Shown here: positions 1,643 through 29,049 of the stretch, piece after piece
How the letters are laid out: each line of letters opens with the position of its first letter
How positions within the stretch are numbered: position 1 is the stretch's first letter
Assembly (NCBI GenBank): GCA_020891255.1
Contig: BQFW01000007.1
Coordinates: 2,232,001 to 2,296,000, forward strand
From: Entomortierella parvispora E1425
Lineage: Eukaryota; Fungi; Mortierellomycota
Length of the DNA: 64,000 bases
Direction of reading: 5' to 3'
Notes under the pieces: generated by a model
Databases searched by the model: none
Told to the model about the DNA's origin: nothing
The model's input: the letters and a program-made list of their open reading frames with translations, nothing else
Position numbers and translations under genes: made by a program

Positions 1643-4600
1643 TTAGTCCGAATGCTGATTTGTTTGACCATGGCTTGCAAACTCCTCCTCGTCGTCCACA
1701 ATGCGCAATCCATCAACACTGTTCTCATTGCCCTCCTCCTCCTCTTCTTCTTCTACGGTACTCTCTTTTTCAAAAATGACTTCTTCACCACCAAGGGTGC
1801 TCGATTCACCAAACTGCAAAATCGGCTCTGGAATATCTACAGGTGCGTTCTTTACGCGTTTCATCGACGGTATTTCCCCTTTGCTCAGTTGAACAAACTT
1901 GTAGCCCACCTCGATCCTTTCCTTGCCCGTCTCCCACGATGTGACCACTAGCCTGATCTCATCGCGGTTACGAAGCTGAAGCCGACCCTCAAAAGTTTCA
2001 TCATTCACTACCGTGCCTCCAGGGCTAAGATTAGTAAGGTACGCCTTTCTCTCTTCGGCTACCCATTCAATGGCACAGTCTATAACAGGTTGGTTGATAG
2101 AGCCATGCCCATCCAAGTTTGAGAATGAGTTAAAACGGAAAAAAACCAGACCAGAACAAAATGAGGTAGGCGACAAGGATGACTTACGTCTGCGACTGAC
2201 AACCTGGCTTGAAATAACGATATCACACTCCTTGTCTCTACCCATTATCGTCCTTTCGGCCTGTAGTTCCTCCATCTGAGTCACGACGTTGAGACGCTTT
2301 AGCTTTCCCCAGATGGGCATACTCTCGTCAGGAGTTCTGTCCTTGGGACGACGCTTCTTGTGTCCTCTGTGCGTGTGGTCCGTATAAAGTCGGCACGCTA
2401 GCTGTTCAGGTGTCGGCGCTTCAGCATCATACAATTCCACATTGTACTTCAAACAATACAGGCATCCCATGGATGTATCTATTTTTCAAGCTTGGCGTTA
2501 ATAACCGCCAGGTGATTCAATCTCTCGTAGTTTCAGTTCCAATGACTCTTACTTTTTGGAGCTCCAGCATGACCAGCGCAAACGACTATGCCCAGTACAT
2601 CACCACTGAATAGTTGACCTGAGCGCATCTTGAGATAGTGCAAATTGTTGATGTATGTTCCATTGAGGCTGGTATTGGACATCATGACAACTCCATCGTC
2701 ATCGCGTTCGATGATGCAATGCTTCACGCTAATGGCGCGTCTTGAACCGAGCAAGACATTGACTTTTTCTACAGATGTATGAAACATATCAGCATCGTAT
2801 CATTTATCGGAATGACGCGAAATTTGTGCATGACACCATGTGCTTACTATCATCTACACGCCCAAGAACGTAGCGAGACTCCTTAAGTTCGATATATCGA
2901 GGGGCATCAGGGAAACCCCCGGGAGCTATTACCAAAGCGCCCCAGGGCTTTTGGTTGACCTGTGTTGTACCATCACCTGAACTGGACACTTTGCTCGTGT
3001 TGAAAATAGCAGTCGATCCCGATCGCTCAATCCTCTATTAGAACAACGAGTAAAATGTTGGTGAATGGGATAGTATAGGTCTTCAAAGGCGCTTGTTCAC
3101 GTATTGGGCGCACTCATACATCTAGGTCGGCAAGCATCTCATCTATCATCCGCATCCAGTCTGAGGTTAAAATTTGGTCCATCCTGGCACGGCATGAAGG
3201 ATCAATGACGAGAATTTCGTCTAAAAGGTACTTCACTAAAAAAGGATAACCGTAATCATAAACACTCAGACAACTGTATCTAAAAGTATTTCGAAGGATC
3301 ACAGATGGAAGTAACAGTAGTTTACCTTCTGGGCTGCGTTTTGATTGCCTGTCTACAAATTGTCTCCAGTCCCGTTTGAGATAGTCGAGATTCATTCTCT
3401 GGTCTTCCTCGTCTTCAACACCCTTGTTAACGAGATTGTCGTATAAATCATCATTAAAAGGGTATTTTCCAACCAACCTGTCCGTGAAGGAGCGTGTTAG
3501 TTTCATAAGGATTTTGGTAAAATTAAAATTAGAGGGAAAAAAATATAAGTCTTCCCTTCAATAGTATCTGCTTACATTCGGAAGAGCAAAACTCCAAGGG
3601 ACCAAATGTCTATTTAGTGACCAGGAGTGTAATAGTTAGCTCATTAGCCCGCACTTCCCAAGATTCGGCAGGCAAATCGACCAACTACAAAGAATTCACA
3701 ATGTCATACCAACCATCGAAGTGTAACCATTTGATTTGTTGCCTGCTCTGATCTCTGGTGCCATATAGGATTCTGTCCCGCAACGGGATGTCAGAACATG
3801 AAGACCGTTCGTGCGCTGTGCTAGACCTAAAAATAATTTGATAGTTGTGTCATTAAAGACGCTTTCTCCTTTGTCCTTGATAATCCGAGTCCTATGATAA
3901 TGAATTTACCGAAATCAACCAGTTTGACCTTGAGATCCTCGTCGACCACTATGTTCTGATGAACAAGAAAAACGTCAATCGTCCTGCTACTCTCCTTTTT
4001 GGCCCTCACTGTTCACGCACTCTCCTACCTCCGATTTGATATCGCGATGGATGATCCCGTTCTTGTGCATATAATCCACTGCGTGACAGACCTGACGGAA
4101 GATGAACCTGGCGTCAAGCTCCGTCAGGTAGTTGTTGTTGTTCCGGTAGTATTCAACGAGCGTGGTTCCCGGAGCAAACTCTGAAAAGATGTAAACAAAA
4201 TCTGGCGTGCGGTGTCTGTCTACAAAAGCAATGATGTTCTCCTAGAAGACAAGAAAGCAAGAAAAAGATGGTCGTGTGAGGAATAGACGCCACCAGTTTT
4301 GCACACGCGTCTTTCTTAAAGGACCAATGAGGACGTTACATGATGCATCAGACTTAGGATGGCAATCTCCGTCTCAATGCTGTCGTGTTCCTCTTCATTG
4401 AATGACCGCTGGTGGAGGTTAATGACCTTGCAGGCACTGACAGCGTTGGTGGTGGTCTCCCTGGCTTTGAAGACTCCTGCATAGTTGCCTCTGGCGAAGG
4501 GTTGATCGTCCAGCTCATAAGTTCCGTGGGTTCCTTGAATGAGGTTCTGGTTCTCACCGAGCTGATTCTCAATGGGCATGAGGACAGTGGTCTGGTGGAC

Positions 4601-4690
4601 GGTGGCACTGCCGGGAGGACTGACACTGCCCCGAGCATCGGAGGTGGGACCGTCCATGGATGGTGCGACGGGTGATGGGTGGCTGTCCAT
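1643..4690 (-). CDS. Ser/Thr protein kinase (CAMK/Chk2-Rad53-like catalytic domain) with two C-terminal FHA domains, copy A; multi-exon
   Basis: GT-AG splicing joins the ORFs in frame. Kinase motifs: ARGNYAGV, ACKVI, IETEI, HRDIKSEN, DFG, CGTESYMAPE, DIWSLGV. A phase-0 intron (GAT|gtatga...ctaatag|AGG) leads into FHA1 (LGR...SVKHC...SLNGTYIN). A phase-1 intron then leads to a KKRRPK linker and FHA2 (MGRDKECD...SRRHC...GGTVVND). Acidic tail; stop at 1643. Confidence 0.9.
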
Positions 4691-8451: not shown

Positions 8452-11444
8452 TTAATCTGATTTTTGACGAGTTTGACCGTGGCTTGTGTGCTCCTCCTCA
8501 TCTACATTGTTCAAAAGGTCTTCACGGTTCTCTTCATCGGCACTGCCTTCCTCCTCCTCTACACTGCTCTCTTTCTCAAAGATGATTTCTTCAGCACCTA
8601 GGGTAGCTTCACCAAGCTGCAAAATCGGCTCTGGAATGTCTACTGGAGCGTTCTTTACGCGTTTCATCGACGGTGTTTCCCCCTTGTCCAGAAGAATGAA
8701 TTTGTAGCCCACTTCAGTCCTCTCCTTGCCCCTCTCCCATGACGTGACCACCAGTCTGATATTATCGCGGTTACGAAGTTGAAATCGACCCTCGAAAGTT
8801 TCATCATTCACTACCGTCCCGCTAGGGCTTAGATTAGTAAGGTACGCCTTCCTTTCTTCGGCCACCCATTCAATGGCACAGTCTATGATATAATATGCAC
8901 GTTCAAAATTGAGAATGAATCAGTGAAAAATACAATATCAAAACAGAACCAAAAATAAAAAAAAAAAAAAAAAAAAAAAGAGGACAACAAAGATGACCTA
9001 CGTCTGCGACTGATGACTTCATTGGAGAGAACAATATCACATTCCTTGTCTCTACCAATTATGGTTCTTTCAGCCTGTAGTTCTTCAGTCTGCGTCTGGA
9101 CATTGAGAGGCCTGAGCATTCCCCAGGTAGGTATATTCTCGTCAGGGATCCTGTCCTTGGGACGACGCTTCTTGTGTCCTCTGTGCTTGTGGTCCATATA
9201 GAGTCGGCGCGCTAGCTGTTCAGGTGTCGGCGCTTCAGCATCGTACAATTCCACATTGTACTTCAAACAATACGGGCATCTCATAGACGTGTCTATTTTT
9301 CAAGTTTGTAGTCAGTGACCAGCGAGCGTGCTTCAAAGATTCGATGGTATGGCAATCTGACTCTTACCTTTTGGAATTGCAAGGTGACCAGCGCAAACAA
9401 CAACACCCAGTACATCACCATTGAATAGCTGACCCGAGCGCATCTTTCGAAAGTGTAAATTGTTGATGTACGTTCCATTGAGGCTGGTGTTGGACATCAT
9501 GACAATCCCGTTGTCATCGCGCTCAATAATACAATGCTTGACGCTGATAGCTCGCCTCGAGCCAAGCAAGACATTGACTTTCTCTACAGAGACGTAAAAG
9601 TCAATCAACGACATGCCACTTGACGAAATTTAACTGACAAAATTGACATGATAATACCATGTACTTACTATCATCTACACGCCCAAGAACATAGCATGAC
9701 TCCCTAAGCTCAATGTACCGAGGGGCATCAGGGAAACCTCCTGGAGCTATCGTCAATGCACCCCAGGGCTTTTGGTGCACTTTAGTTGAATTGCCGCCTG
9801 AACTGGATACCTCATTCAAAATGTTAGCCGATCCTGAACGGTCAATCTTCTAGAGAAAGAAATGAGCAACCGGGTGTCAGTGAATGGAATAGTGGAGGCT
9901 TTGAAAAGAAGTTTGTTCATGTACAAAATAGCGTTCGTACATCTAGGTCGGCAAGCATCTCATCTATCATCCGCATCCAGTCTGACGTTAAAATTTGGTC
10001 CATCCGGGCCCGGCACGAGGGATCAATTTCGAGCATGGTCTCCAGAAGGTGCTTCACTAAATGAGATGGCAACAATCATAACGTTCTCGTACAGGTGAGT
10101 GAAGGAGGAGGACATATCGAGAAATCACAGATATCAGTAGAATACCTTCTGGACTCCGTTTCGATTGCTTGTCTACAAATTGTTTCCAGTCTCGTTTGAG
10201 ATAGTCAAGATCCGATTCCTGGCCCGCTTCACGATCATCCTCTGTGTCTTTTTTAACGAGCGTTCCATACAAATCGTCATCAAATGGGTATTTTCCAACC
10301 AACCTGTTCGTAAATAAAGCGTATTAGCTTCGTAGGGCAACCGAGAAAAAAAAAGGGGAGGCTATCCAACATTAGTATCTGCTTACATCCGGAAGAGCAG
10401 AACTCCAAGGGACCAAATGTCTATTTAGTGACCGGGAGTGTAATAGTTAGCTCATTAGCCCGCACTTCCCAAGATTCGGCAGGCAAATCGACCAACTACA
10501 AAGAATTCACAATGTCATACCAACCATCGAAGTGTAACCATTTGATTTGTTGCCTGCTCTGATCTCTGGTGCCATATAGGATTCTGTCCCGCAACGAGAT
10601 GTCAGGACATGAAGTCCGTTCGTGCGCTGTGCTAGACCTAAAAACAAATTGTCAGTTCTGTCATTAAAGACGCTTTGTCCTTTGTCCTTGACAATCCGAG
10701 TCCTGTGATAATGAATTTACCGAAATCAACCAGTTTGACCTTGAGATCCTCGTCGACCACTATGTTCTGATGAGGAAGAAAAGCGTCAATCGTCCTGCTA
10801 CTCTCCTTTTTGGCCCTCACTGTTCACGCACTCTCTTACCTCCGATTTGATATCGCGATGGATGATCCCGTTCTTGTGCATATAATCCACTGCGTGACAG
10901 ACCTGACGGAAGATAAACCTGGCGTCAAGCTCCGTCAGGTAGTTGTTGTTGTTCCGGTAGTATTCAACGAGCGTGGTTCCCGGAGCAAATTCTGAAAAGA
11001 TGTAAACAAAATCTGGCGTGCGGTGTCTGTCTACAAAAGCAATGATGTTCTCCTAGAAGACAAGAAAGCAAGAAAAAGATGGTCGTGTGAGGAATAGACG
11101 CCACCTGTTTTGCACACGCGTCTTTCTCAAAGGACCAATGAGGACGTTACATGATGCATCAGACTTAGGATGGCAATCTCCGTCTCAATGCTGTCGTGTT
11201 CCTCTTCATTGAATGACCGCTGGTGGAGGTTAATGACCTTGCAGGCACTGACAGCGTTGGTGGTGGTCTCCCTGGCTTTGAAGACTCCTGCATAGTTGCC
11301 TCTGGCGAAGGGTTGATCGTCCAGTTCATAAATTCCTTGGGCGCCCTGGATGAGCTTTTCCCTCTCTACAGGCATTGGGACGGTGGCCTGGGCGGCGACA
11401 TTGCTAGAGGGGCCGGCATTGCCTGTAGCATTGCTCCTGTCCAT
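8452..11444 (-). CDS. Ser/Thr protein kinase with two C-terminal FHA domains, copy B; multi-exon
   Basis: Same exon/intron layout and motifs as copy A. Probable ATG at 11444 (MDRSNATG). The kinase-to-FHA1 junction (GAT|gtacga...tctag|AAG), FHA1-to-linker junction and FHA2 junction (AGA C|gtaggt...catag|AC TGT = SRRHC) are all in frame. I found no disabling lesion in the junctions and exons I checked. Confidence 0.9.
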
Positions 11445-11496
11445 GGCGATGCAATGTGACAGTCCGAGATGAGTGAGTGTCTCGACAAAAAAAGCA

Positions 11497-11765
11497 CAAT
11501 GTGATCTCAGCCACGAACACGGGTAATCTGGGGGGAGTTGCGAAAAATAGTAATGGGAAATAGGTAATAAGCAAATGAATGAATGACATGCACACCCTTC
11601 TCCTGAGCAAGAGAGAACGAGAATGATGAATGTCCGATCCTTAACTGCTGCGGCTGGGGCACCGCGAAATGATGCCGAGCGGAAACCAAATGTCGCGAGG
11701 ACATTCTCACTCTTCTTCATTCTCGTCTCTCCGCTCATTCAGAAACGCGTCCGTATCCGCGCGAA
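11497..11765. promoter_or_regulatory. Upstream region of copy B: paralog-conserved block plus MCB/SCB-like sites
   Basis: CAATGTGATCTCAG (11497), CGGGTAATC (11520), GAGTTGCGA (11535); CGCGAAA at 11663; ACGCGT at 11745. Confidence 0.4.
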
Positions 11766-14632
11766 CGTACAGAGCACTCTGACACTCGGCCGGCCCTTGC
11801 CTACATATCGTGCCGATGGCTCGTGTTGGCGTCAAACGCTGGCTTCGCTGATGGGCTCAAGTTTTCATCCATATTTTGCGGCTGATGGTTGCTTCACTGG
11901 CCTTTGCTCTGTATTTTTGCTTTTGGCCAAGGAGTTGCGCGGAAAGCGCTATCTTGCTCGTGGGTTGTCCTCTCGTCTCTGTCCACCCCTAGTGTTTTCT
12001 CGGTTCTATTTCTCCTCGACTGTCCCTCTCGCCCTCTTCTTGTCTCTGCATTTCTATTGCTTCTCTATCTTATATACCTTCCATAGCTCAATTGCCCGTA
12101 GGCTTGCTGTCACAAAAAGTTGAGCTGCTTCTTCTCACCCTCGCACAGTCTTATTGATAGAAAGTGATCTTGCTGCCATTGCTTCAATTCCAATGGCGAG
12201 CATCGGTTCTCGACTGGATTGATCAAGTGCGGGTTTTACTGAAAAGTCAGGAATCAAACAAGGTCCTGCGGCACCGTCTCTTCAAACTCCTGACAAGGAT
12301 CCAACCCGAGCTTTCCCCAAGAAGCAATCTGAATGGCTCCCGAAGGGGAACAAAATTCATTATCGGAAGAATGTTCTCGAGGAGGAAAGGGATAGCCATT
12401 TCGCCTTCGGGACAGTCTCCCCCCTTTCTGAAAAAAAAAAAAAAAAAAAAACACCTCGTCTGTGAAGTTGCACGAGACAAACATACCTCATGCCTTATCT
12501 GTAAAGGAATGGGATCGAAGTAGGGAATCTAATTTGGCCATTGCGCTGCTGGAGCTCAGTCAATCTTACAGGTCTCATAACCATGTCAGGTATATTCTTT
12601 GGGCTATTTGTTCTGCTGGTAAAGCCTTTGGACCTTTGGGCACTTGACAAAAAAGTTCATGTCTGTTCGTTCTTCTAGAAAAAAAATCGCCTGGCCTTTC
12701 AAGTTAGACAAAACGAAACCTTTAGATGGGTCAATTGACGAGCTGATCCAGCAATGGAAGAGAGAATCTTGCATCGCGTCAGAGACATAAAAAGATTCTG
12801 GTCCACACAGCATCGTCTCTAAACGATTGTGGCGTACTTCTAGCAGATATACCGGTGATATCACGAAACTGAGAGAAGAGAAGAGAAGAAGAAAGAAGTC
12901 ACTCATGCAACCATCGCTCGGCGACATGACGATGTAGAAAAGGCTAGATTTTTTTTTTTTTTTTGCAACGTCTGATCAGCTTTCACTCACGCCAGCAATA
13001 GCGCAGAGAATCGTGCAGTGAAGTAATTACTCAGTGGCATCTTGGACGTACGTTTGCACAACACGCATCTTGCAACCTTTGACGAGAATAGCAAGTGACA
13101 AGAGCCCGTTGTTTGCTTGATGAAATGAGTACTGTGCTACGACAACGTACATAGTGCTCTCGTTTCCAATTGAAAGCAGATCTTTTGCGGGGGAGAGTGG
13201 TCGTTTTTGGAGTGTCCAAATGTCATGTCGACCTTCTTGGATGATTTCTGGAAAGACCCTGCGGATGGTGGATAGGGGTTTGAACAGATCAGGTAGCTCT
13301 CGCCATTTTGAGCAGCAACTGAAGACGCGAATCGCTTTCTTGAACCTTCCTCCAACTCAGGTCCGACATATGAGGTCATGATTGATGTCGCACGTGCAAT
13401 TTAAAAACGAATTGAACGTTAATTTAATGAGGATCCGGACCCGTTGTGGGGTCAGAAGGGAGCCTGGGATCCATTCAGAGAGAAAGGACCCATGTCGAAT
13501 CTAAGCAAAAGACCGGGCAATGGAGAAGAGGAAGAAGAGCCGCAGTTCAAGCTTGCAAGAAGAGGAAGAGGGGCACAAGGGAGCACAGGCATGGAAAAGT
13601 GAAAAGTGCAAAAAGGAACTGACCCCGAGACCAACGGCGGGGTCACACAGAGCTGCGATGAAATGAATTTTTTGATTTTTTCTTATCTCTGTGCTTTGAG
13701 CCGAGGGAGTGAAGTGCGCGGATGACCAAAGAACGTTGTTTTTGACTTTATGCACACCCCTGTCGTCTGTGTCTGTCTGTCGACCTCTCTGTCTGTGTGT
13801 GTCTTTCTCTGACTTGATCTTCTTTCGTGGATTTTTTTTTCTTTTTTTCTTTCTCCACAGATGCTTTGTTTGTTTGTTGTGAGGGAAAGGAGGTCGAGCT
13901 GGGAAGGAAGGGAAGGGATTCCAAGGGAACACAAAGGGACAGCGAGACATGGCCCAGGAAAAAAAAAAAAAAAAAAAAAAAGAAATAAAAAGGGCTCAGA
14001 GGAAAAAGAATGCGCGATGCATAATCTCCGTGGGTTCGTGGGTGGGCGAGTGGACCAGAGTGGAGGGGCAGGCAGGACAAAGGAAGAGAAGGGAAGGGAA
14101 GGGATGCACTGCACTCTGTCATGGACACGGACATGCAGACAAACAGGCAGACAGACAGACAGACAAACACAAAAAAAAAAAGTCTTTCCCTCCTTTTTGC
14201 ACTAGCGAGCCAAACAATTGGCTCCTTTTTGCTCCGTTATCTCTCACACATCACCCCCCCTCTCTCACACTCTTTTTGGCTCGCAGCACATCTCACACCT
14301 CCACTCACTGCTCACTGTCTCACTTCGGTTTCTTCCTGCGTCCCTTTTGTCTTTGTCTTTCGTCCCTTCCACTTTCTGGCCCTTTTCTCTTTCTTCTCTT
14401 CGCTCCATTCTTTTCATTCATTCACCTTGCTCGACACCTTATTCCTGATTCTTCATTTATTCATTCTCACCTTCTCCTTCCCTTCGTCATAAACCTTCAC
14501 TTTGCTCACATTCATTCTCCTCCCGCCTCTCTCTTCCGTTGTTCGCTCCGCCCTGCATATTGCTGCATAGACGCACTTTATCTCTGGCTATAGTTCCTCA
14601 CTACTCCATTTCTCCATTCCTCCCTTGCCTGT

Positions 14633-17389
14633 ATGACCTTTTCCATTCCCCAGCCTATTCCCTCTCGTTCTTCCCATCCCGTCCACGCTCACCAACGCCC
14701 CCCTATCCGTCGCTCACAGTCCCATACCATCGCCACCGTTGCTGCCACCCTCGCAGACTCGCCCTCGACAGTCGGTGGTAGTGGCGCGAATCCAAAGTTT
14801 GGTATCACTCATCTCCTCGCCAGTGCTCTCCATCCCGATATCGGCGAGGATCTGACCCTAGGCAACGATGATGATCTTGACGATCACTGTGATCACGACG
14901 AGGACGACGACGACGAGTCCTCTGAGCCGTTGGTAGAGCGACGGTTCGATAGCGGCCATTATAGCAGCATGGAGGAGGAGAACAGGGGGATCCCCATTGG
15001 CAAGCCCAGCTTTCTCTATAAATCCAACCCTGTTTCTGCTTTCTCGAACCGGTCCAGCAACAGCCATCTGTATGGCACGTATGGCAGTGGCAGCGTTGAC
15101 GCGTCCGCTCAGCTCAGTGGAGGTCCAGGGCACCCGTCCCGGCGACATGTGTACAGCCACAGTCACTCCAACAGTGATGGCCACAACAGCATGAATGTCA
15201 TGGCCAATAACCTCAAAGGCACCCACAGCAACAAGAGCAAGAACCAAGCGAATGGTGGCCAAGATGCCACTGACTGCATCAACGGCAACTTGTCGACAAA
15301 CAGTCTTGGTTTGCGTGCGACAGTCGATCATACCCGGAATGAACTCCAACCCCAAATACCTCATGTCGAATACCAACCTCAACCACCCTCACCACAACAA
15401 CAAATGGCGCTAACAGAACAGGCTAGCACCGCAGCTGTGCCCTCCCTGTTCACCCCCTTTGCGGATGCACCTTCCTCATCTAGGAGCATTGCTATTCCAC
15501 AACAAGCAAATCGTCAGGAGGGAGCACAGAGTGTTGCACGTCCCACCAGCAACGGTCCCCCCACACCAGCCCCTGGCCCAACACAGCATCCTCACCCCAT
15601 CATCTCTATTGACACATCCAAAGCGCGTCTGATCAAGACGCCAGTGTCTGCACCCAAGGACACCATGGCAACAAAGGAGGCAGGCTCTGCAGTGGCAGTC
15701 AAGCGGGCCGTGTCCATAAGTGCCCTTCCGAGGTCTCGTGCAGAGGGTCAGCTAACCCTGGGGTTACGTAAAGAGGAAAAGGCGTCGACACCCGGTGCCA
15801 CCGTTACTGCACCGACTTCATCCAGCACTGCCAACAACTCGTCCACACGACCCTTGATGATGGCAAGTCAGTCGCGGCTGAGCTCGGCCCTCCCCCCCAC
15901 CCCGTCCTATCATCAGCGCCAGCATTCTCTTACTGCTCAAGAGTCTGTTCTTCTCCCCGCACTCTCCCCTTCCTCCCCTCGAGCCAACTCTGCCCTCGTC
16001 ACTTCACTCGAGCAACTCTCTGTGTCCTGGAAGGCCCCAGAGCATACCCCTAGTTTCCCCATCAACCGACTCCATCGCTCTCGAACAATTTCTTCCGGCA
16101 CCCGCCCCAGCATCAACTCGTCCTTCTCCTCCAACGGTACTTTTGGCTCTTCCAACAATTCTGGGAACCAGTATCAGTTTCAGCAGAGTAACCTTGTCTC
16201 ACCCAGCACCATGGTCACATCGTCATCTTACAGTTCATTGCCCTATTCCCCTGCGGTGGCGTTCCTTTCCAACTTTGTGGACGCGACTGCGCCGCAGATG
16301 GCACCGGATGAGGAAGGCGAGCAGGTCGGAGACTTTATCATGGGCAAGGTCATTGGTCACGGTGGATTCTCTATTGTTCGAGAAGCCTTTGCGATTCATC
16401 TGGACGGAATGGTAGCGCAGGTCGCGGTCAAGATCGTCAAGACGCAGACGGGACTGACCGACAATGACAGAGTCCAAAGGATGCTTGACAAGGAGGTGGC
16501 TATCTGGAGCCGACTTGCCCACCCCAACGTGCTCCCGTTTGTCGCTGTGGAGAAGCTCCCCTGCAGCACATTTGTCTTTTGCGAGCTTTGCACTGGAGGC
16601 CATCTTTTGGACTATATCACCAAGCAAGAGGCATCCTCCTATCTTTCACCCCGCGCTGGCAGCAGCACCATCGGCCTGGGCGAAACGCAGGCTAGATTGA
16701 TCTTCAACCAGATTGCAGAGGCAGTGCGATACCTCCACGAAGAGAAGCGGATTGTTCACCGCGACATCAAGCTTGAAAACATTCTGCAACATGAGGACGG
16801 CACTTGGAAGATTTGCGACTTTGGACTGGCTGAGTACCAAAACGATGAGGCGGCCTCTTACTTTGGATCCCCCGTCTCCCCGACCATCTACAACCCCAGA
16901 GCCTCCCAGTCCAAGGGACTTCAAGGTAGTCCAACCAGTGCCCGGAGCGATAGTAGTCTCCCAGATGATAGCAATGCAGATATCATGGCGGAGGACGATG
17001 ACGATATTGTGGGTGGATCTTTGGCATACTGCTCCCCAGAGCAACTCCGGTCCCAAAAGCCTCTCCGATGTCCATCATCGGATGTGTGGTCGCTCGGTGT
17101 GGTACTCTACGCGCTCTTGACAGGCCGCCTTCCCTTCCAAGACGAGTACGAGCCTCGACTCCAGTACCAGATTCTGAATGGACGGTACGAGGACCCGACC
17201 GAGTGCAGTGTCGAGGCCCGTGAGTTGTTGCGCAATATGTTTAGATCCAAGCCTGAAGACCGTTGGCGTATTGGCCAAGTGATGGACAGCCCGTGGTGTA
17301 TGGGCACGATGCAAGAGAGCTGCTTTGATGACTATAACAATGGCAGCACCAAGCTTAACAATAACTTTTTCGCGTCTTTCCGCATGTAA
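14633..17389 (+). CDS. Single-exon CAMK-group (CAMKL-like) Ser/Thr kinase with long disordered N-terminus, 918 aa
   Basis: C-terminal kinase domain: IGHGGFSIV, VAVKIV, HRDIKLEN, ICDFGLAE, GSLAYCSPE, DVWSLGVVLY, GRLPF. The N-terminal ~560 aa are Ser/Pro/Gln-rich. Confidence 0.93.
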   Translation: MTFSIPQPIPSRSSHPVHAHQRPPIRRSQSHTIATVAATLADSPSTVGGSGANPKFGITHLLASALHPDIGEDLTLGNDDDLDDHCDHDEDDDDESSEPLVERRFDSGHYSSMEEENRGIPIGKPSFLYKSNPVSAFSNRSSNSHLYGTYGSGSVDASAQLSGGPGHPSRRHVYSHSHSNSDGHNSMNVMANNLKGTHSNKSKNQANGGQDATDCINGNLSTNSLGLRATVDHTRNELQPQIPHVEYQPQPPSPQQQMALTEQASTAAVPSLFTPFADAPSSSRSIAIPQQANRQEGAQSVARPTSNGPPTPAPGPTQHPHPIISIDTSKARLIKTPVSAPKDTMATKEAGSAVAVKRAVSISALPRSRAEGQLTLGLRKEEKASTPGATVTAPTSSSTANNSSTRPLMMASQSRLSSALPPTPSYHQRQHSLTAQESVLLPALSPSSPRANSALVTSLEQLSVSWKAPEHTPSFPINRLHRSRTISSGTRPSINSSFSSNGTFGSSNNSGNQYQFQQSNLVSPSTMVTSSSYSSLPYSPAVAFLSNFVDATAPQMAPDEEGEQVGDFIMGKVIGHGGFSIVREAFAIHLDGMVAQVAVKIVKTQTGLTDNDRVQRMLDKEVAIWSRLAHPNVLPFVAVEKLPCSTFVFCELCTGGHLLDYITKQEASSYLSPRAGSSTIGLGETQARLIFNQIAEAVRYLHEEKRIVHRDIKLENILQHEDGTWKICDFGLAEYQNDEAASYFGSPVSPTIYNPRASQSKGLQGSPTSARSDSSLPDDSNADIMAEDDDDIVGGSLAYCSPEQLRSQKPLRCPSSDVWSLGVVLYALLTGRLPFQDEYEPRLQYQILNGRYEDPTECSVEARELLRNMFRSKPEDRWRIGQVMDSPWCMGTMQESCFDDYNNGSTKLNNNFFASFRM

Positions 17390-17763
17390 TTCCCTTTGGG
17401 GGGAGAACAGGGCCTTCCCCCGTCAACTCCTTTGTCTATACCTTTACTTTCAATAAAAACCCTCTGTATATGTAGTAATTGTCAGGTGGGGGTGAACGCG
17501 TCGGACTCGATTGGTGGCACGATGTCACCGTGCGCCTCGAGTCAACATAAATCTTCGCCAGTGGAGCCTTTCCTTCTCTCTCTTTCTCTTTGTTCTACTA
17601 CATTCCTCTCACCTAACCTTCGCCATCGATCCATTCATTCATACATTCATTCACACTAAAACTTCATTGACGTACCCTGCATTCCATCAGGACCCAGCAT
17701 CCCGATTCCTACAACTGGCCAATGGCAAAACCAAAAAAGACGTAAAGCTCCTTCATCTTCATT

Positions 17764-17794
<31 letters not shown>

Positions 17795-18009
17795 GAAAGT
17801 CTTCAACCCCTCGCCACTGTTTTTCTACCCATTGTTCTTCATGACTGGGTGGCTATACTCCACAGACAGAAAGGACCTCTGAATTGCTTTAGCTGCGGAA
17901 CTGCGCCAGGCAGTTTTCTTTTTCATTTTTCGATTGACTTTATCATCCATGGCTTTTTTTTTCTTGTTCATTTGGTTCAATGAAAAAAAAAGAATCAGAT
18001 CAATAACCG

Positions 18010-20376
18010 ATGCGGGTTTTATTTGTATTTATGTATTTTCCCCCTCATAGAAAATTGCTGCCCCCTCGGCATACCCATACCCAGTCAGAATTCGTTTATG
18101 AACGAACGACAGCCTTCAGAGATGACAAGGACATTGCGCTCGACAAATCCATTCGGAAAGAAGAAGAGGAAATGTTGATCCTGGCACGCTTGCTGCGATC
18201 GGTCGCCAATGATCAGGAGAGGATGGTCGAGGTCACGAAACAAATCCTGTCTGTCAAAGGCCGAAACGATGACCATGGTGTTGATGATGTTGGCGGCAAC
18301 GGTGACGATGGTCACCACAGCAGCGGTAGCAGTAGTAGTAGTAGCAGCAGTAAAGGCGACACAGGTGGCAACATTCAAGATGTTGTATTGGTGGCCCGTG
18401 TAGCCTTACAGTTGGACCTGGACCCAGACTCTGACTCTACAGTCTCTGGCAGGACTCGGACCTTCAGGTCTTCCTCCTCTCGGAAAGAATACTCGGGTCT
18501 CCCAGATGTGTTACCACCGCCTCCTCCCTCTTTGACAACAGCGGGCTATCAAGCCCTCCCACCGATTTCGGATTTCCCGCTCTTGTCAGCCAAGAGCTTG
18601 AGAATTCTTCAGAGCCACAACAAGGGGAAGCCCTCCAATGGCTCAGGAGTCAAGAAAAAGCGATTTGCGGGCGGCGCCAAGAGCCATGGTGGTGGAGGAG
18701 GAGGTGGCGAAACATTCTCATCGAGGCGGGGGTCCTTGGACACCGGCAGCCTTGGCACTGCGCACAAGAGGCGTGGTAAGACCCATTCACTTTTTTTTTC
18801 CAGTTCTGAAGAGATACTCTCCAGTCAAGGCAGGCCATGATGCCCGAATTGGGTCATTGACTCAGCCCTTCTTTTTACCTTCTTTTTTATCTTTGCCTTT
18901 TTAGCTTCATCAACAGGAAGCAGCGTTGGTGACGATGCCGATTTTAGTCCATCGCAAGAAGATAACAGTCGTGGTGCGAGAAGCTTTCAAAAGACGACAA
19001 CGACTCGCTCTGGACGGGAAGCGGTGGTGCAAGGGTCACAGGATGTTGTCATGACCTCCACCTCCGACAACAACAATGCTGGGGTGGCCAAAGATCACGC
19101 GACCCCACTGGCCACAAGAACGATACCCGGACTCCGACCTACCTCCAAACACACGCCTGTGCCGAAATCAAATCCCACGTATGCCGCCCCCGCCTCCAAG
19201 ACCCCTCCAGCAAAAAGGGCGCGGCGCGGGTCCACGTCGGAACCAGCTTCGAGGGCATCAGCCACACCCGTCTCGGAAATATCAGAGACGGCAGTGGTGG
19301 CAGAGGGAACACCAGACACGAACGGAGAGACGAGCGACCCTGATTTTGAGCCAGACACTTGCCTGCAGTGTATCCGAGCAAAGACACGATGCCATGGTTG
19401 CCAGCGAACGAGAAAAAATACATGGTCTCGGTGTATCCGATGCGTCCGCCATGGAATCCGGTGTGATCCTGTCGTCGCTGCAGTGGCCTATGCATTGGAC
19501 CCTACTTTGCCACCCATGTCATCCCTTAAAGCTCCGAATGCTGTAGGATCTATGGGTCATACCGCCGTGGCTGCAGCTGCTTCGGCTTCGGTAGTATCGC
19601 CCATTGACACCATGGGCAATGTTGACTCGACCGTTCCGACAGATGCTGCAGCTGCAATGCCGCATTCGGCTATCGCTGATTCCTTGGACAAGCGTAGGCC
19701 GTGCACCCATTGCAAGTCAGTCCGTGTCAAGTGCGAATATCTGAATAGACGCGATGATGGCAGCAAGGATCTGTGTCGGCGATGCATCAGGCTTCACTTG
19801 GAGTGCGTATCCAGCGATCGAAGCAGGCCCAAGGATATGAACCCATCCGAGGTCTTGGCTCCTGTCGATCTAGAGAGAATCAAGGAGGAGCTTTGGAAGG
19901 CTGGCGGCCCTTCCGGAGTAGACCCTCGGGATCTGTTGCCACCTTCGGTCGTAGCTGCGGCTGGTCCTCTCCTGTCGAATAATCTGGACGGTGAAGATTA
20001 TCAGATTGGAAAGAAACGTCAATTAGCCTTTCCCGATGGGATCTCCAAGGCCAATATTCTGCAGCATCGACCTCGACGTGCTGCCGCTACCACGGCGACT
20101 GCCACTGCCGGTTCTCCTCCTATGCCAAGAAAGACGTCATCTGCTGCCCCAACAAGGGCACGATCTGAGCAGTCGGGCCGGTCAAAGTCGATCTCAAGCT
20201 CGTCCACAGACGCAGACCTGCCTTTGGAAAACAGAGGCGCTGCCACCACCATCACGACTAGGGCTGCAGCCCCCGATACCACCGTGAAGGACCCGAGGTC
20301 CGATGGTGACCTCAACATCTCTGTATTGGCCGTGACAGGCGAACCTGACGAGATTGTGCCTTCCGCCAGAGACTGA
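18010..20376 (+). CDS. Fungal Zn(II)2Cys6 transcription factor with two binuclear clusters; 5' end uncertain (candidate upstream ATG at 17722)
   Basis: Phase-1 intron CGT G|gtaaga (18776)...tttttag|CT TCA (18904) joins ORF 18010 to ORF 19024 in frame. Two C-x2-C-x6-C-x13-C-x2-C-x6-C motifs (CLQCIRAKTRC...CIRCVRHGIRC and CTHCKSVRVKC...CRRCIRLHLEC). Basic NLS-like segments. Confidence 0.75.
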
Positions 20377-25872: not shown

Positions 25873-28800
25873 TCACAGGATGGTGCAGCACTTTGACTTG
25901 TGCACGTCAGGATCATAATGATACACTCGATCGTCTGATACAGTCGGAACGCCTGTCCATCGGCCTTGCTCGTCCTCTCCTTGGATACCGCTCCTTCTGG
26001 CAAGCGGACTGTTTGGATTGTAGACGTTCGTGGCCCTGTTACGGAGTCCGACATTGGTCTCCACGCCGGTGTTGCTTACACCGACGCCAGTTGCGTTCAA
26101 GTAACCTTGCAGATGCGCGGACGAGTAGGAAGGACGGCTGCCTGTGGCACCAGGTTCGTCTGGTTGAGAGTACAGTGGCATTTTCTCAGGGTCGTTGCTA
26201 AACGGTGGTTGTTCTTGTGATACGGGTCCCCCTGTGGGTTGTTGCTGTAGATATTGTAGGGGTTGTGAGTACGACGAATCAAAGTTGTTGTCGGATGCGG
26301 ACTTCTTTTCGGTAGAGGGCTCGCGTTGACCGACGATACTCTCAGTGGAGGCGATGGGTTGACTCCTGAGTCGCGTTAATTTCAAAAACTCTTGTTGCTG
26401 AAGCATCAATATGTCGGACGAGTTACTCGACCGATGCGAAGAAAGTCCTTTCGCCTGTTGGAACTGCTCAAGACCTTGATCCGAGCGTGGGTTTTGTGAG
26501 TACTGCTGCTGTTGTTGCTGGAGTTGAGGTACCCACGGTTGAAGAGGCGGTTCCAAGCTGTGATCGGTGGAATAAGATGTCCGTGGATCGGACAAGGATG
26601 GAACCGAAGAGGCGTAGTTGTAAGGGTCGTTGATGTTACCGTTGTTTGTTTGAACAGAGGCAAACCCTCCCTTTTTATCCTCGACCAAAGGCATTTGATT
26701 ACTGCTCCAGATGGCCAAGCCCTCATTTCTGCTTTCCCGCATGCTGCCAACGCTAGCCGCAGTAGTCCTCTCGACAGTGTTCACATCCCTGTAAGAGTTG
26801 ACATCCGCAATATTCACATTGGAGACCTGGTAAGCATTGGGACTCCAGTCCGACTTTGAGGGCTCAGTGACTCCTTGAGGCATGACCCCTGATGCCGACT
26901 GACCTCTGACAAGGTATGAAGGCGAAGATGGAGACTGTCCATTGTGGTTATACGATGACACGTTGCGACCCAGGACCGACTGAGATTCCACACTACGCAC
27001 AGGGATAGAATCAGGATCATCCCTGACTTCTTCTTTGCTAAAGTTTGCCACGCCTGTCACATTTGTCCCCGGACTTCCAGTTCTGACCGTTGGAGAGAAC
27101 CCTAGTTGTGAATTTTGCAATGGTGTCGACGATAGTGGGGTGGACGTGAGTGGGGTGGAGGAGGCTGAGGATGGTAATGAAAATCCACGAAGCGCTTGAG
27201 CTATTTCGCTCGGTGTGGAGGACGGTTGAGACGATGTGGGCCAAGAACCCGTGGCTGAGTATGGATTGCCACCGACAGGAAGGCTGTTGTCGGGAGAAGT
27301 GTCCCCTGTTGACCCAACGGTGGCAATGGGCTTGGCAGTAAAGTATGAATCGCCTAGAGTTGGTGCATAGAAAAGTCAATTCTGGGTTAGTGCCCAAAGC
27401 ATAAAAGAAAAAAATAGTCGCGATATCGCGTACTTGCGCATGTACATGGATCATAGTTCAGGACATACCTGGGTTGTATTTTGTTTGGATCCTCAATGGT
27501 ATGGTGTCCGTCACGGCGGGAGATGACAATGCGGAGAGTCGCGGGGAATGGTCGGAAAGGTTTGGTGATTTTAAGGATTCGCGCTCGTACCTGATGGTCG
27601 TGGCAAGGTCGGAGGCATAACTACGTTTACTCAGTTGTGAATCTGATCGGTCCAGTTTTTGTCGTCCCTTGAAGGAATTGGTTCGCGATGCTTGCAAAAC
27701 GGCGCTTTTCAAATAAGGACTCGAAGGGGATATCGATGAGTCTCTATTGGGAGTCTCCCGGACCACTTTATCAGTCGCGGCCATCTCAAAAAGTTCCCGA
27801 GGCGATAGCATGGGTCGTTTTGAGATGGATTGTTGTTTTGGTGTAATAGGGGCGCCAAAACTATTGGGTGCCTTTGGAGAGCTGGGGCTGGGTATCGGGG
27901 GTTCTTCTTCCTTTTTGTTGTCTCTGTTCAATTTCGCTCCACGACTGGAGACCCTCCGTGGGATAATGGGCAAAGTGCTTTCGAGTTGACAGCCAAAGAG
28001 ATCACCATCGCTGTCCACGCTCAGGACATAGCCATCTGCTCCAACGCCCAAAGTCTCGATTTTAGCGCCTCCACCCAAGCAGATCCAGCTGTGATGACGA
28101 AAGCGGTATGCATGTCCATCCTGGCCCACACCAACAATATAATCGGCCGTGGATAATGTACAGCTGATCATGTGTAAACCAGTTCCGGGCCCTGTGCCCG
28201 GCAGTGCAGACCAGATGGGTGGGTGTGATGCGGAAGGATGCGTCTTTAAACGAAAGACTCTGCCCGAAGTTGCATCCGTCGCCAGAACAAGATTGTCGTG
28301 CCCGACAGAGATCTGACTGAACTTTGGAGCATCGTATCCGGCGCCCGAGGTGACAGAGAACTCTAGTTGAACAAATCGATCTGATGTCCCGTAATAAATG
28401 TCGCCTACTTCTGTCAAGCCCCAGATTTGAGAGATGGAGGCAACACTATTTGAGTTGGAAAAGAGGCCGTCGATTAGTCAAAAGAGGGGCAGCGCTTGAT
28501 GGCGGTCATCAAGGTGTAGGCTCGCAAGGTTTGCAATCTCGTTTGTTGAACTTGCCTGACACACTTCCAAAAGTGACCGAGGTCGATCCAGATGACATCT
28601 TTTTCATAGTCGGTGTGGTCATGGGGCGCGATGAGATACCAGGCCTTGAATGACCCATCCAGCCGTACGACGGTGCCGTCGGTGGCAGCCGAGACCAACA
28701 CGGTCGATTCGCAGTTCTCGTCATCGTCCCCCATGTTAGGATTCGGTGTTGTTGGATTTGAGTTTAAGGACTGTAGGCCCAAGGAGGGAAGGATCGACGC

Positions 28801-29049
28801 CAATTTTTTGGTGGCGAGGGACGAGGACGAGGAGACGGATGTCGAGAGGGCGGATCCGGCGGAAGAGGACGAGAACCTAGATCTGTTCACAGACTCGGTC
28901 GTGATGGAGACGAGTTGCCACTGCTTTGTCTCTGGGTTGAGCTTGCAGAGCTGCTGGTCCAGGGTCACGCCCCAGATGCTGTCCTTATTGGCAACCGCTA
29001 CGGACTGGAGTCTCCCTGGGACTGCGTGCCAAAGGGTCGTTGACTCCAT
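25873..29049 (-). CDS. Tectonin-like beta-propeller protein with long disordered tail and C-terminal CaaX (KSKCCTIL); 3 exons
   Basis: About 6 blade-like repeats (LQSVAVANKDSIWGV; WKCVSVASISQIWGL; FSQISVGHDNLVLAT; IETLGVGADGYVLSV). A GC-AG intron (28555-28446) and a GT-AG intron (CCA G|gtatgt...ctctag|GC GAT) join the three ORFs in frame. Confidence 0.75.

Follow-up and report, generated by a model that had tools for sequence, protein, structure and literature searches.

Tandem kinase-FHA-FHA genes of Entomortierella parvispora: headless members of a probably Chk2/Rad53-like family of the Mortierellaceae

In the kinases Chk2 and Rad53, a cluster of SQ/TQ dipeptides and an N-terminal FHA domain link the enzyme to signalling by ATM/ATR and bring about its dimerisation and activation, and local crowding permits autophosphorylation of the activation loop. 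Here we describe two neighbouring genes from the soil fungus Entomortierella parvispora E1425, referred to as copy A (1643-4690, minus strand) and copy B (8452-11444, minus strand), whose products carry a kinase domain followed by two FHA domains; the coordinates are those of the window, the whole stretch of 64,000 nucleotides of contig BQFW01000007.1 that was analysed. The proteins resemble Rad53 of Saccharomyces cerevisiae, which has the order FHA1-kinase-FHA2, in being CAMK-group kinases that carry FHA sequence on the C-terminal side of the catalytic domain, and among kinase FHA domains the FHA1 profile of their family matches Rad53 FHA1 best (7e-10). They differ from it in having neither an N-terminal FHA domain nor SQ/TQ clusters, and two C-terminal FHA domains rather than one; this is a likeness only and does not imply orthology. 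The comparison with Chk2/Cds1 runs through the longer relatives of the two genes, which share with it the order SQ/TQ cluster, FHA-like domain, kinase, whereas what defines Chk2 is exactly what is absent from the window copies. Our reading, to which we give a probability of about 0.65, is that copy A and copy B are single genes of a Chk2/Rad53-like family of the Mortierellaceae from which the N-terminal head, that is the SQ/TQ and FHA-like module, is missing, and that their products dock through their FHA domains without SQ/TQ priming.

Read on the minus strand and spliced at canonical sites, copy A is one gene of 11 exons: exons 1 to 6 lie at 4690-4340, 4241-4029, 3955-3910, 3826-3710, 3609-3576 and 3477-3326, and exons 7 to 11 at 3235-3120, 3034-2848, 2768 (or 2762)-2553, 2478-2188 and 2079-1643. 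The ten introns are all of the GT..AG type and 73-108 nucleotides long, and a CTAAC/CTAAT-like branch site is present in the majority of them. The gene corresponds to GenBank EMPS_05463, with a matching span of 3048 nucleotides and a product of 719 residues ordered as kinase, FHA1, basic linker, FHA2 and acidic tail. Exons 1-7 (3120-4690) encode a unique N-terminus of about 60 residues, which has no SQ/TQ, and the kinase at residues 67-332; exons 8 and 9 with the intron 8 between them (2553-3034) cover a linker and FHA1 (residues about 373-480); exon 10 (2188-2478) contributes the final FHA1 strand LKYNVELY, the basic linker HRGHKKRRPKDR (residues 514-525) and the start of FHA2; and exon 11 (1643-2079) supplies the remainder of FHA2, the conserved motif KRVK (648-651), the acidic tail and the stop codon. 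Copy B (EMPS_05464, 698 residues) is a tandem paralogue, also with 11 exons, and has introns at all ten copy A positions; its intron 7 lies at 9850-9940. The surroundings are eukaryotic in character, with about 50% GC and short introns.

The kinase and FHA parts are joined across intron 7 (3035-3119), which is 85 nucleotides long, runs from GTATGA to CTAATAG and is in phase 0. The TGA that follows ...MLADLD lies inside the donor GAT/GTATGA at 3119, and joining to ...CTAATAG at 3035 keeps the frame; retention of the intron would end translation one codon past ...LADLD. The original prediction, made from the letters of the window, had proposed this very splice between 3119 and 3035, a single protein with the domain order given above and the same junctions in copy B. 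The spliced model, Pfam and EMPS_05463 all agree with the single protein, and the junctions of copy B correspond at all ten positions. The accompanying claim that the architecture is hidden by introns has to be withdrawn: the public annotation already carries the fused proteins, which equal our spliced models except for two residues at intron 8, and the fused protein is present in GenBank and UniProt, labelled hypothetical. The annotation of E. parvispora was produced by AUGUSTUS fed with transcripts assembled from RNA sequencing (RNA-seq) (PMC8759367). An annotation with such hints gives the fusion indirect transcript support, which is not proof at this locus.

Between the two copies, outside a tract of gene conversion, exons are 78-87% and introns 62-71% identical, and exon insertions and deletions come in multiples of three. 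The tract itself, at 3580-4530 and 10391-11341 on the minus strand, spans about 950 base pairs at 94-100% identity, includes introns 1-4 and has sharp edges; its synonymous divergence (dS) is 0.06, compared with about 0.7-0.8 elsewhere in the gene. A further small feature of both copies is a pair of in-frame acceptor AGs six nucleotides apart at intron 8 (2762-2768 and 9577-9583), of which the GenBank models take the upstream one, which adds an extra Lys-Lys within FHA1.

Pfam places the kinase domain (PF00069) at residues 67-332 of the copy A GenBank protein (E 6.6e-65) and FHA domains (PF00498) at 398-466 (38.1 bits) and 555-618 (55.5 bits), both above the curated FHA cut-off of 20.7 bits. 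The catalytic motifs of copy A are kept, namely K88, ETE 106-108 with the alpha-C glutamate, HRDIKSEN 182-189, DFG 202-204 and APE 226-228. Its activation loop has serine and threonine residues (the S217/T221 region) at positions that we take to be those of Chk2 T383/T387. Copy A and copy B are probably active CAMK-group Ser/Thr kinases. FHA1 of copy A holds all of the usual binding-loop residues (PWGAL, GR 401-402, SVKH 419-422 and NGT..N 441-446), and FHA2 has the corresponding motifs IWGKL, GR 557-558, SRRH 572-575 and GGTVVN 595-600.

An AlphaFold2 model of copy A residues 340-719, built on a 16-sequence family alignment, shows FHA1 and FHA2 as two beta-sandwiches with a predicted local distance difference test score (pLDDT) of 80-90, and disordered inter-domain linkers and 75-residue acidic tail (29% Asp plus Glu across the last 80 residues). 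Foldseek matched this C-terminal model to many FHA structures, among them Rad53 FHA1, Ki-67 and Chk2, with a probability of 1.00 and target template modelling scores of 0.7-0.85. A clear relationship between FHA1 and FHA2 is seen with hhalign (E 4.7e-16). Among solved FHA sequences, the one nearest to FHA1 is that of CHFR (1.4e-6) and the one nearest to FHA2 is that of Ki-67 (2e-7), the PWG.L first strand included; neither of these proteins is a kinase, so that the likeness holds at the domain level only. A K-R-x-K-like motif near the C-terminus is found family-wide, and HRGHKKRRPKDR and KRVK are possible nuclear localisation signals.

As the original prediction had stated, there is no SQ/TQ cluster in the window proteins: copy A has three such dipeptides and copy B one, scattered over the whole protein. 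The same applies to EMPS_05527, a third E. parvispora paralogue of 701 residues that lies 260 kb off on the same contig and has a single scattered dipeptide, and in none of the three does an SQ/TQ stand ahead of the kinase. Between the kinase and FHA1 there is a short S-G-S-T-x-I-[LF] motif, at residues 348-355 of copy A (about 3000-3025 of the window; alignment columns 8-20), that is conserved in copy A, EMPS_05527 and the headless gene of Gryganskiella cystojenkinii; copy B has alanine in place of the threonine. Chk2-type FHA domains prefer pT-x-x-[IL], with which the motif is compatible, and it may serve as a ligand for FHA domains of the same protein.

The family to which the two copies belong is a narrow one. 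When 1.84 billion representative proteins were scanned by HMMER with FHA2 as the query region, only 14 matches came back, the long ones (837-923 residues) coming from Mortierella alpina, Haplosporangium, Lobosporangium, Modicella and Entomortierella lignicola, and a further search added relatives from Podila, Linnemannia, Dissophora and Gryganskiella. Family members score at E<=1e-87, after which the matches drop to generic kinases at about 1e-48. Full-length relatives of 790-923 residues occur across the Mortierellaceae under inconsistent GenBank labels ("Checkpoint kinase 2", "mek1", "CAMK" and "hypothetical"), and the order kinase, FHA1, linker, FHA2 is common to all relatives, partial or fused gene models aside. 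In the C-terminal FHA domains the residues W, G, L, G, R, I, L, GR, N107, W195 and GR218-219 are invariant across the family. KAF9574463.1 of M. alpina and KAF8985304.1 of E. lignicola illustrate the relation to the window copies: they fall in the same kinase clade and have a collinear FHA1-linker-FHA2 part with the invariant WG.L, GR and N; the full-length proteins differ in some 200 extra N-terminal residues, and most of them lack the long acidic tail. Two public gene models depart from the common pattern. The family gene of Mortierella sp. GBAus27b is annotated as two models, and the G. cystojenkinii model (locus 9786-15104) joins the headless gene to a downstream Paf67, which is probably an annotation merge.

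In the full-length members that were examined, 220-275 residues precede the kinase. These include an invariant S-Q..T-Q..T-Q cluster about 40 residues before an FHA-like domain, which AlphaFold2 folds confidently (mean pLDDT 79 over the whole modelled segment) and whose fold Foldseek finds closest to the FHA domains of Rad53, Chk2, Mek1 and Dun1. The domain is degenerate, with G-T or G-N for G-R and with S-x-x-H and N-G lost. Family members thus usually have the order SQ/TQ cluster, pseudo-FHA, kinase, FHA, FHA.

The window copies lack the first two of these elements. Only 60 residues precede the kinase in copy A, 41 in copy B, 41 in EMPS_05527 and 14 in the G. cystojenkinii gene, and the 41-60 residues of copies A and B have no Pfam match. 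A tblastn search with the N-termini of seven family members found nothing in the 64-kb window, nor did family N-termini match anything upstream of the Gryganskiella gene (10 kb) or of EMPS_05527 (8 kb); the E. lignicola gene, which served as a positive control, is matched by the same queries (1e-19 to 1e-35). To look for a full-length member in E. parvispora, the N-terminus from E. lignicola was also run in a word-index search, which returned only the cluster of the query itself; this blank is uninformative, as this type of search also missed known homologues.

Two maximum-likelihood trees of the kinase domain, drawn up with no CAMKL sequences, place these headless genes within the family. In both, the Mortierellaceae family is a clade with 100/100 support that contains copy A and copy B; this, together with the origin of the long matches, upholds the suggestion that the kinases form a lineage-specific family. 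Copy A, copy B and EMPS_05527 group at 100/99; the Gryganskiella gene joins them with supports of 93/78 and 95/67, and the resulting group sits inside the full-length members. The genes for Med5, a SET-domain protein and trehalose-phosphate synthase (TPS) are neighbours of EMPS_05527 and of the Gryganskiella gene alike. The shared Med5-SET-TPS locus and the tree together imply that the headless form is older than the split between Entomortierella and Gryganskiella, and that the pair in the window are later duplicates. The architecture had been called permuted in the original prediction. That description gives way to one of loss, as the headless forms nest among members with the order SQ/TQ, FHA-like, kinase, FHA, FHA, and because the nearest outgroup, from Coemansia, also has an N-terminal FHA domain. 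The simplest reading of these sequences is that the whole SQ/TQ and FHA-like module was lost in the headless sub-lineage.

The outgroup is KAJ1880602.1 of Coemansia sp. RSA 486 (Kickxellomycotina), a protein of 842 residues with an FHA domain at 67-137, the kinase at 178-448 and further FHA domains at 497-553 and 741-801, all above the Pfam cut-offs. It resembles the window proteins in having a kinase and then two FHA domains, and differs from them in its canonical N-terminal FHA domain and a kinase that is clearly Chk2/Rad53-like; the best solved matches of a near-identical partial copy are Chk2 (3e-51) and Rad53. In the two kinase trees the Coemansia protein is sister to the Mortierellaceae family with supports of 96/93 and 90/83. 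This ties the family to kinases of the Rad53/Chk2 type, a relation that had been put forward as an option from the window alone and that gains its support here, and it suggests that the two C-terminal FHA domains predate the Mortierellaceae. The family FHA hidden Markov models (HMMs) match the canonical N-terminal FHA of Coemansia best, and one-to-one orthology of the C-terminal domains is not settled by them.

How such a kinase might work goes beyond its architecture, its family and the loss of its head, and is what we infer as a working model. The two C-terminal FHA domains would dock the kinase on partners that already carry phosphothreonine; crowding there could then allow autophosphorylation of the activation loop in the S217/T221 region, and the active kinase would phosphorylate targets nearby. 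The basic motifs HRGHKKRRPKDR and KRVK suggest that this may take place in the nucleus. Since there is no SQ/TQ cluster, direct priming by ATM/ATR-type kinases is not expected, unlike in Chk2 and Rad53, and checkpoint input, if any, would arrive via the phosphorylated partners and not through the kinase itself. A function of the window kinases in the response to damage is no more than plausible.

Several observations weigh against this reading, and most of them concern the kinase. The best solved matches of the window kinase are SIK3, Snf1 and MARK (1e-37 to 1e-35), with Chk2 outside the top 60, and on kinase sequence alone the family is as near to these CAMKL kinases as to Chk2. The sister relation with Coemansia carries a long-branch warning in the 96/93 tree and is below the star threshold in the other, and in both trees, which had no CAMKL sequences, the family forms a polytomy with Mortierella Chk2 and the ascomycete FHA-kinases. 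The kinase phylogeny that had been proposed as a check was of divided outcome, with a Chk2/Rad53-like sister in Coemansia and Chk2 itself left in the polytomy. The glycine-rich loop of copy A reads A-R-G-N-Y-A, not G-x-G-x-x-G, with the middle glycine alone kept. In FHA2 the usual N-G turn is GG in copy A, SG in copy B and NA in EMPS_05527, and phosphothreonine binding is less certain for FHA2 than for FHA1, as predicted from these residues. For the splicing, the evidence consists of sequence logic and an annotation built with RNA-seq hints. Nuclear localisation and a connection with DNA damage are guesses. It is possible, if rather unlikely in our view, that the family has nothing to do with checkpoints and consists of CAMKL-like stress, metabolic or polarity kinases, with FHA domains for general phospho-docking and with the SQ/TQ dipeptides of the relatives incidental or belonging to another PIKK pathway. 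SIK3, Snf1, MARK and AMPK are the best solved matches not only of the window protein but also of a full-length relative; Mortierella has a separate canonical Chk2 (550 residues, FHA-kinase, top PDB match Chk2 at 1e-56); and the N-terminal FHA of the full-length members has lost its GR, SxxH and NG. Such an account has to contend, however, with the full-length relative that aligns collinearly with Chk2 over FHA and kinase (E 1.8e-34), with an invariant SQ..TQ..TQ just ahead of the FHA-like domain, which is a hallmark of Chk2/Rad53, with an N-terminal fold nearest to the FHA domains of Rad53, Chk2, Mek1 and Dun1, and with the grouping of the family with the Chk2/Rad53-like protein of Coemansia.

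The other explanations bear on whether the genes are whole, single and functional. That the copies are decaying, N-terminally truncated duplicates without function would account for the missing module and for the presence of three copies in one genome. It is nonetheless very improbable, given frames that are intact over the 11 exons, both in the three paralogues and in the Gryganskiella gene with its conserved locus, the retention of all catalytic and FHA1 motifs, and ratios of nonsynonymous to synonymous divergence (dN/dS) between copies A and B of 0.19 in the kinase C-lobe, 0.125 in linker and FHA1, 0.12 in FHA2 and 0.18 in the tail, at a dS of about 0.7-1.1. We give scarcely any credence to two genes per copy, one for the kinase, ending at the TGA that follows ...LADLD, and another further downstream for the FHA domains, even if the unspliced frame does stop right after the kinase in both copies and the GBAus27b gene is annotated in two parts. 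Only 85-91 nucleotides lie between the kinase and FHA parts in the two copies, the GT and AG sites and the phase are kept in both, and the relatives whose domains were scanned have kinase, FHA and FHA in one protein. The higher identity of exons than of introns and the low dN/dS likewise speak for a single gene. Moreover, neither copy has a methionine in exon 8, which codes for the first FHA1 strands and the GR motif within them; the FHA part can therefore not be a separate open reading frame, and a separate gene would cost FHA1 those strands. N-terminal SQ/TQ and FHA-like exons that exist and were missed, being far upstream or too diverged, are just as hard to credit. The N-terminal module does evolve fast, Pfam misses it in E. 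lignicola, and the word-index search with it found only itself; against this stand the blank tblastn results at the window, Gryganskiella and EMPS_05527 loci while the E. lignicola control matched, upstream intergenic spaces of 0.8-3.7 kb, and an in-frame stop before the copy A ATG.

With copy A and copy B taken as headless members of a Chk2/Rad53-like family, a longer history can be sketched, which we regard as doubtful. FHA-kinase-FHA-FHA would be an old Rad53-type architecture of early-diverging fungi, common to Coemansia and the Mortierellaceae and maybe ancestral to the FHA1-kinase-FHA2 order of budding yeast; its N-terminal FHA would have lost the phosphothreonine site in the Mortierellaceae, and the head would then have been dropped in Entomortierella and Gryganskiella. 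What remained would be an effector kinase of checkpoint descent that ATM/ATR no longer primes on an SQ/TQ cluster of its own and that is activated only when its two C-terminal FHA domains dock on phosphorylated partners. Such a docking site could lie in the SQ/TQ cluster that a full-length paralogue carries, or in the kinase's own S-T-x-I-L motif.

A literature search on C-terminal FHA kinases, tandem and three-FHA kinases, Mortierella Chk2 and Rad53 in early-diverging fungi turned up no account of the family or of its architecture, and the GenBank entries are hypothetical proteins, in keeping with the expectation that no described family of this kind exists. The finding is an evolutionary and descriptive variation on Rad53/Chk2-like FHA kinases and not a new mechanism. 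The Mortierellaceae family would represent a natural rearrangement of the Chk2/Rad53 logic, with a degenerate N-terminal FHA domain and two canonical C-terminal ones, and in one sub-lineage, which is under purifying selection, the head is gone entirely. Should these kinases still act in the damage response, they would offer an alternative route to recruit and activate a checkpoint effector; if not, they would be an example of a checkpoint kinase scaffold re-used elsewhere. The three-FHA, Rad53-like architecture of the Coemansia protein also lies outside the Mortierellaceae, and so bears on the origin of the second FHA domain of Rad53.

Some observations on the neighbourhood of the two genes remain. 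In E. lignicola the full-length gene lies between a Uds1 gene and a Tectonin gene. The Tectonin orthologue of the window (25879-29043, minus strand), which is 43-58% identical over matched pieces to the E. lignicola locus (14675-18659), has no kinase adjoining it. The headless pair lies 14 kb from it, in a different order than in E. lignicola, and this proximity may be coincidence or the trace of a replacement at the ancestral locus. A kinase match at 16.3-17.3 kb that appeared beside the Tectonin search was set aside as an unrelated kinase: the single-exon gene at 14633-17389 (plus strand) encodes 918 residues with a long low-complexity N-terminus, is 25-32% identical to FHA kinases and is not a family member. 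Further along, at 19024-20376 (plus strand), an open reading frame of 450 residues has two Cys-rich stretches resembling the motifs of Zn2Cys6-type fungal transcription factors.

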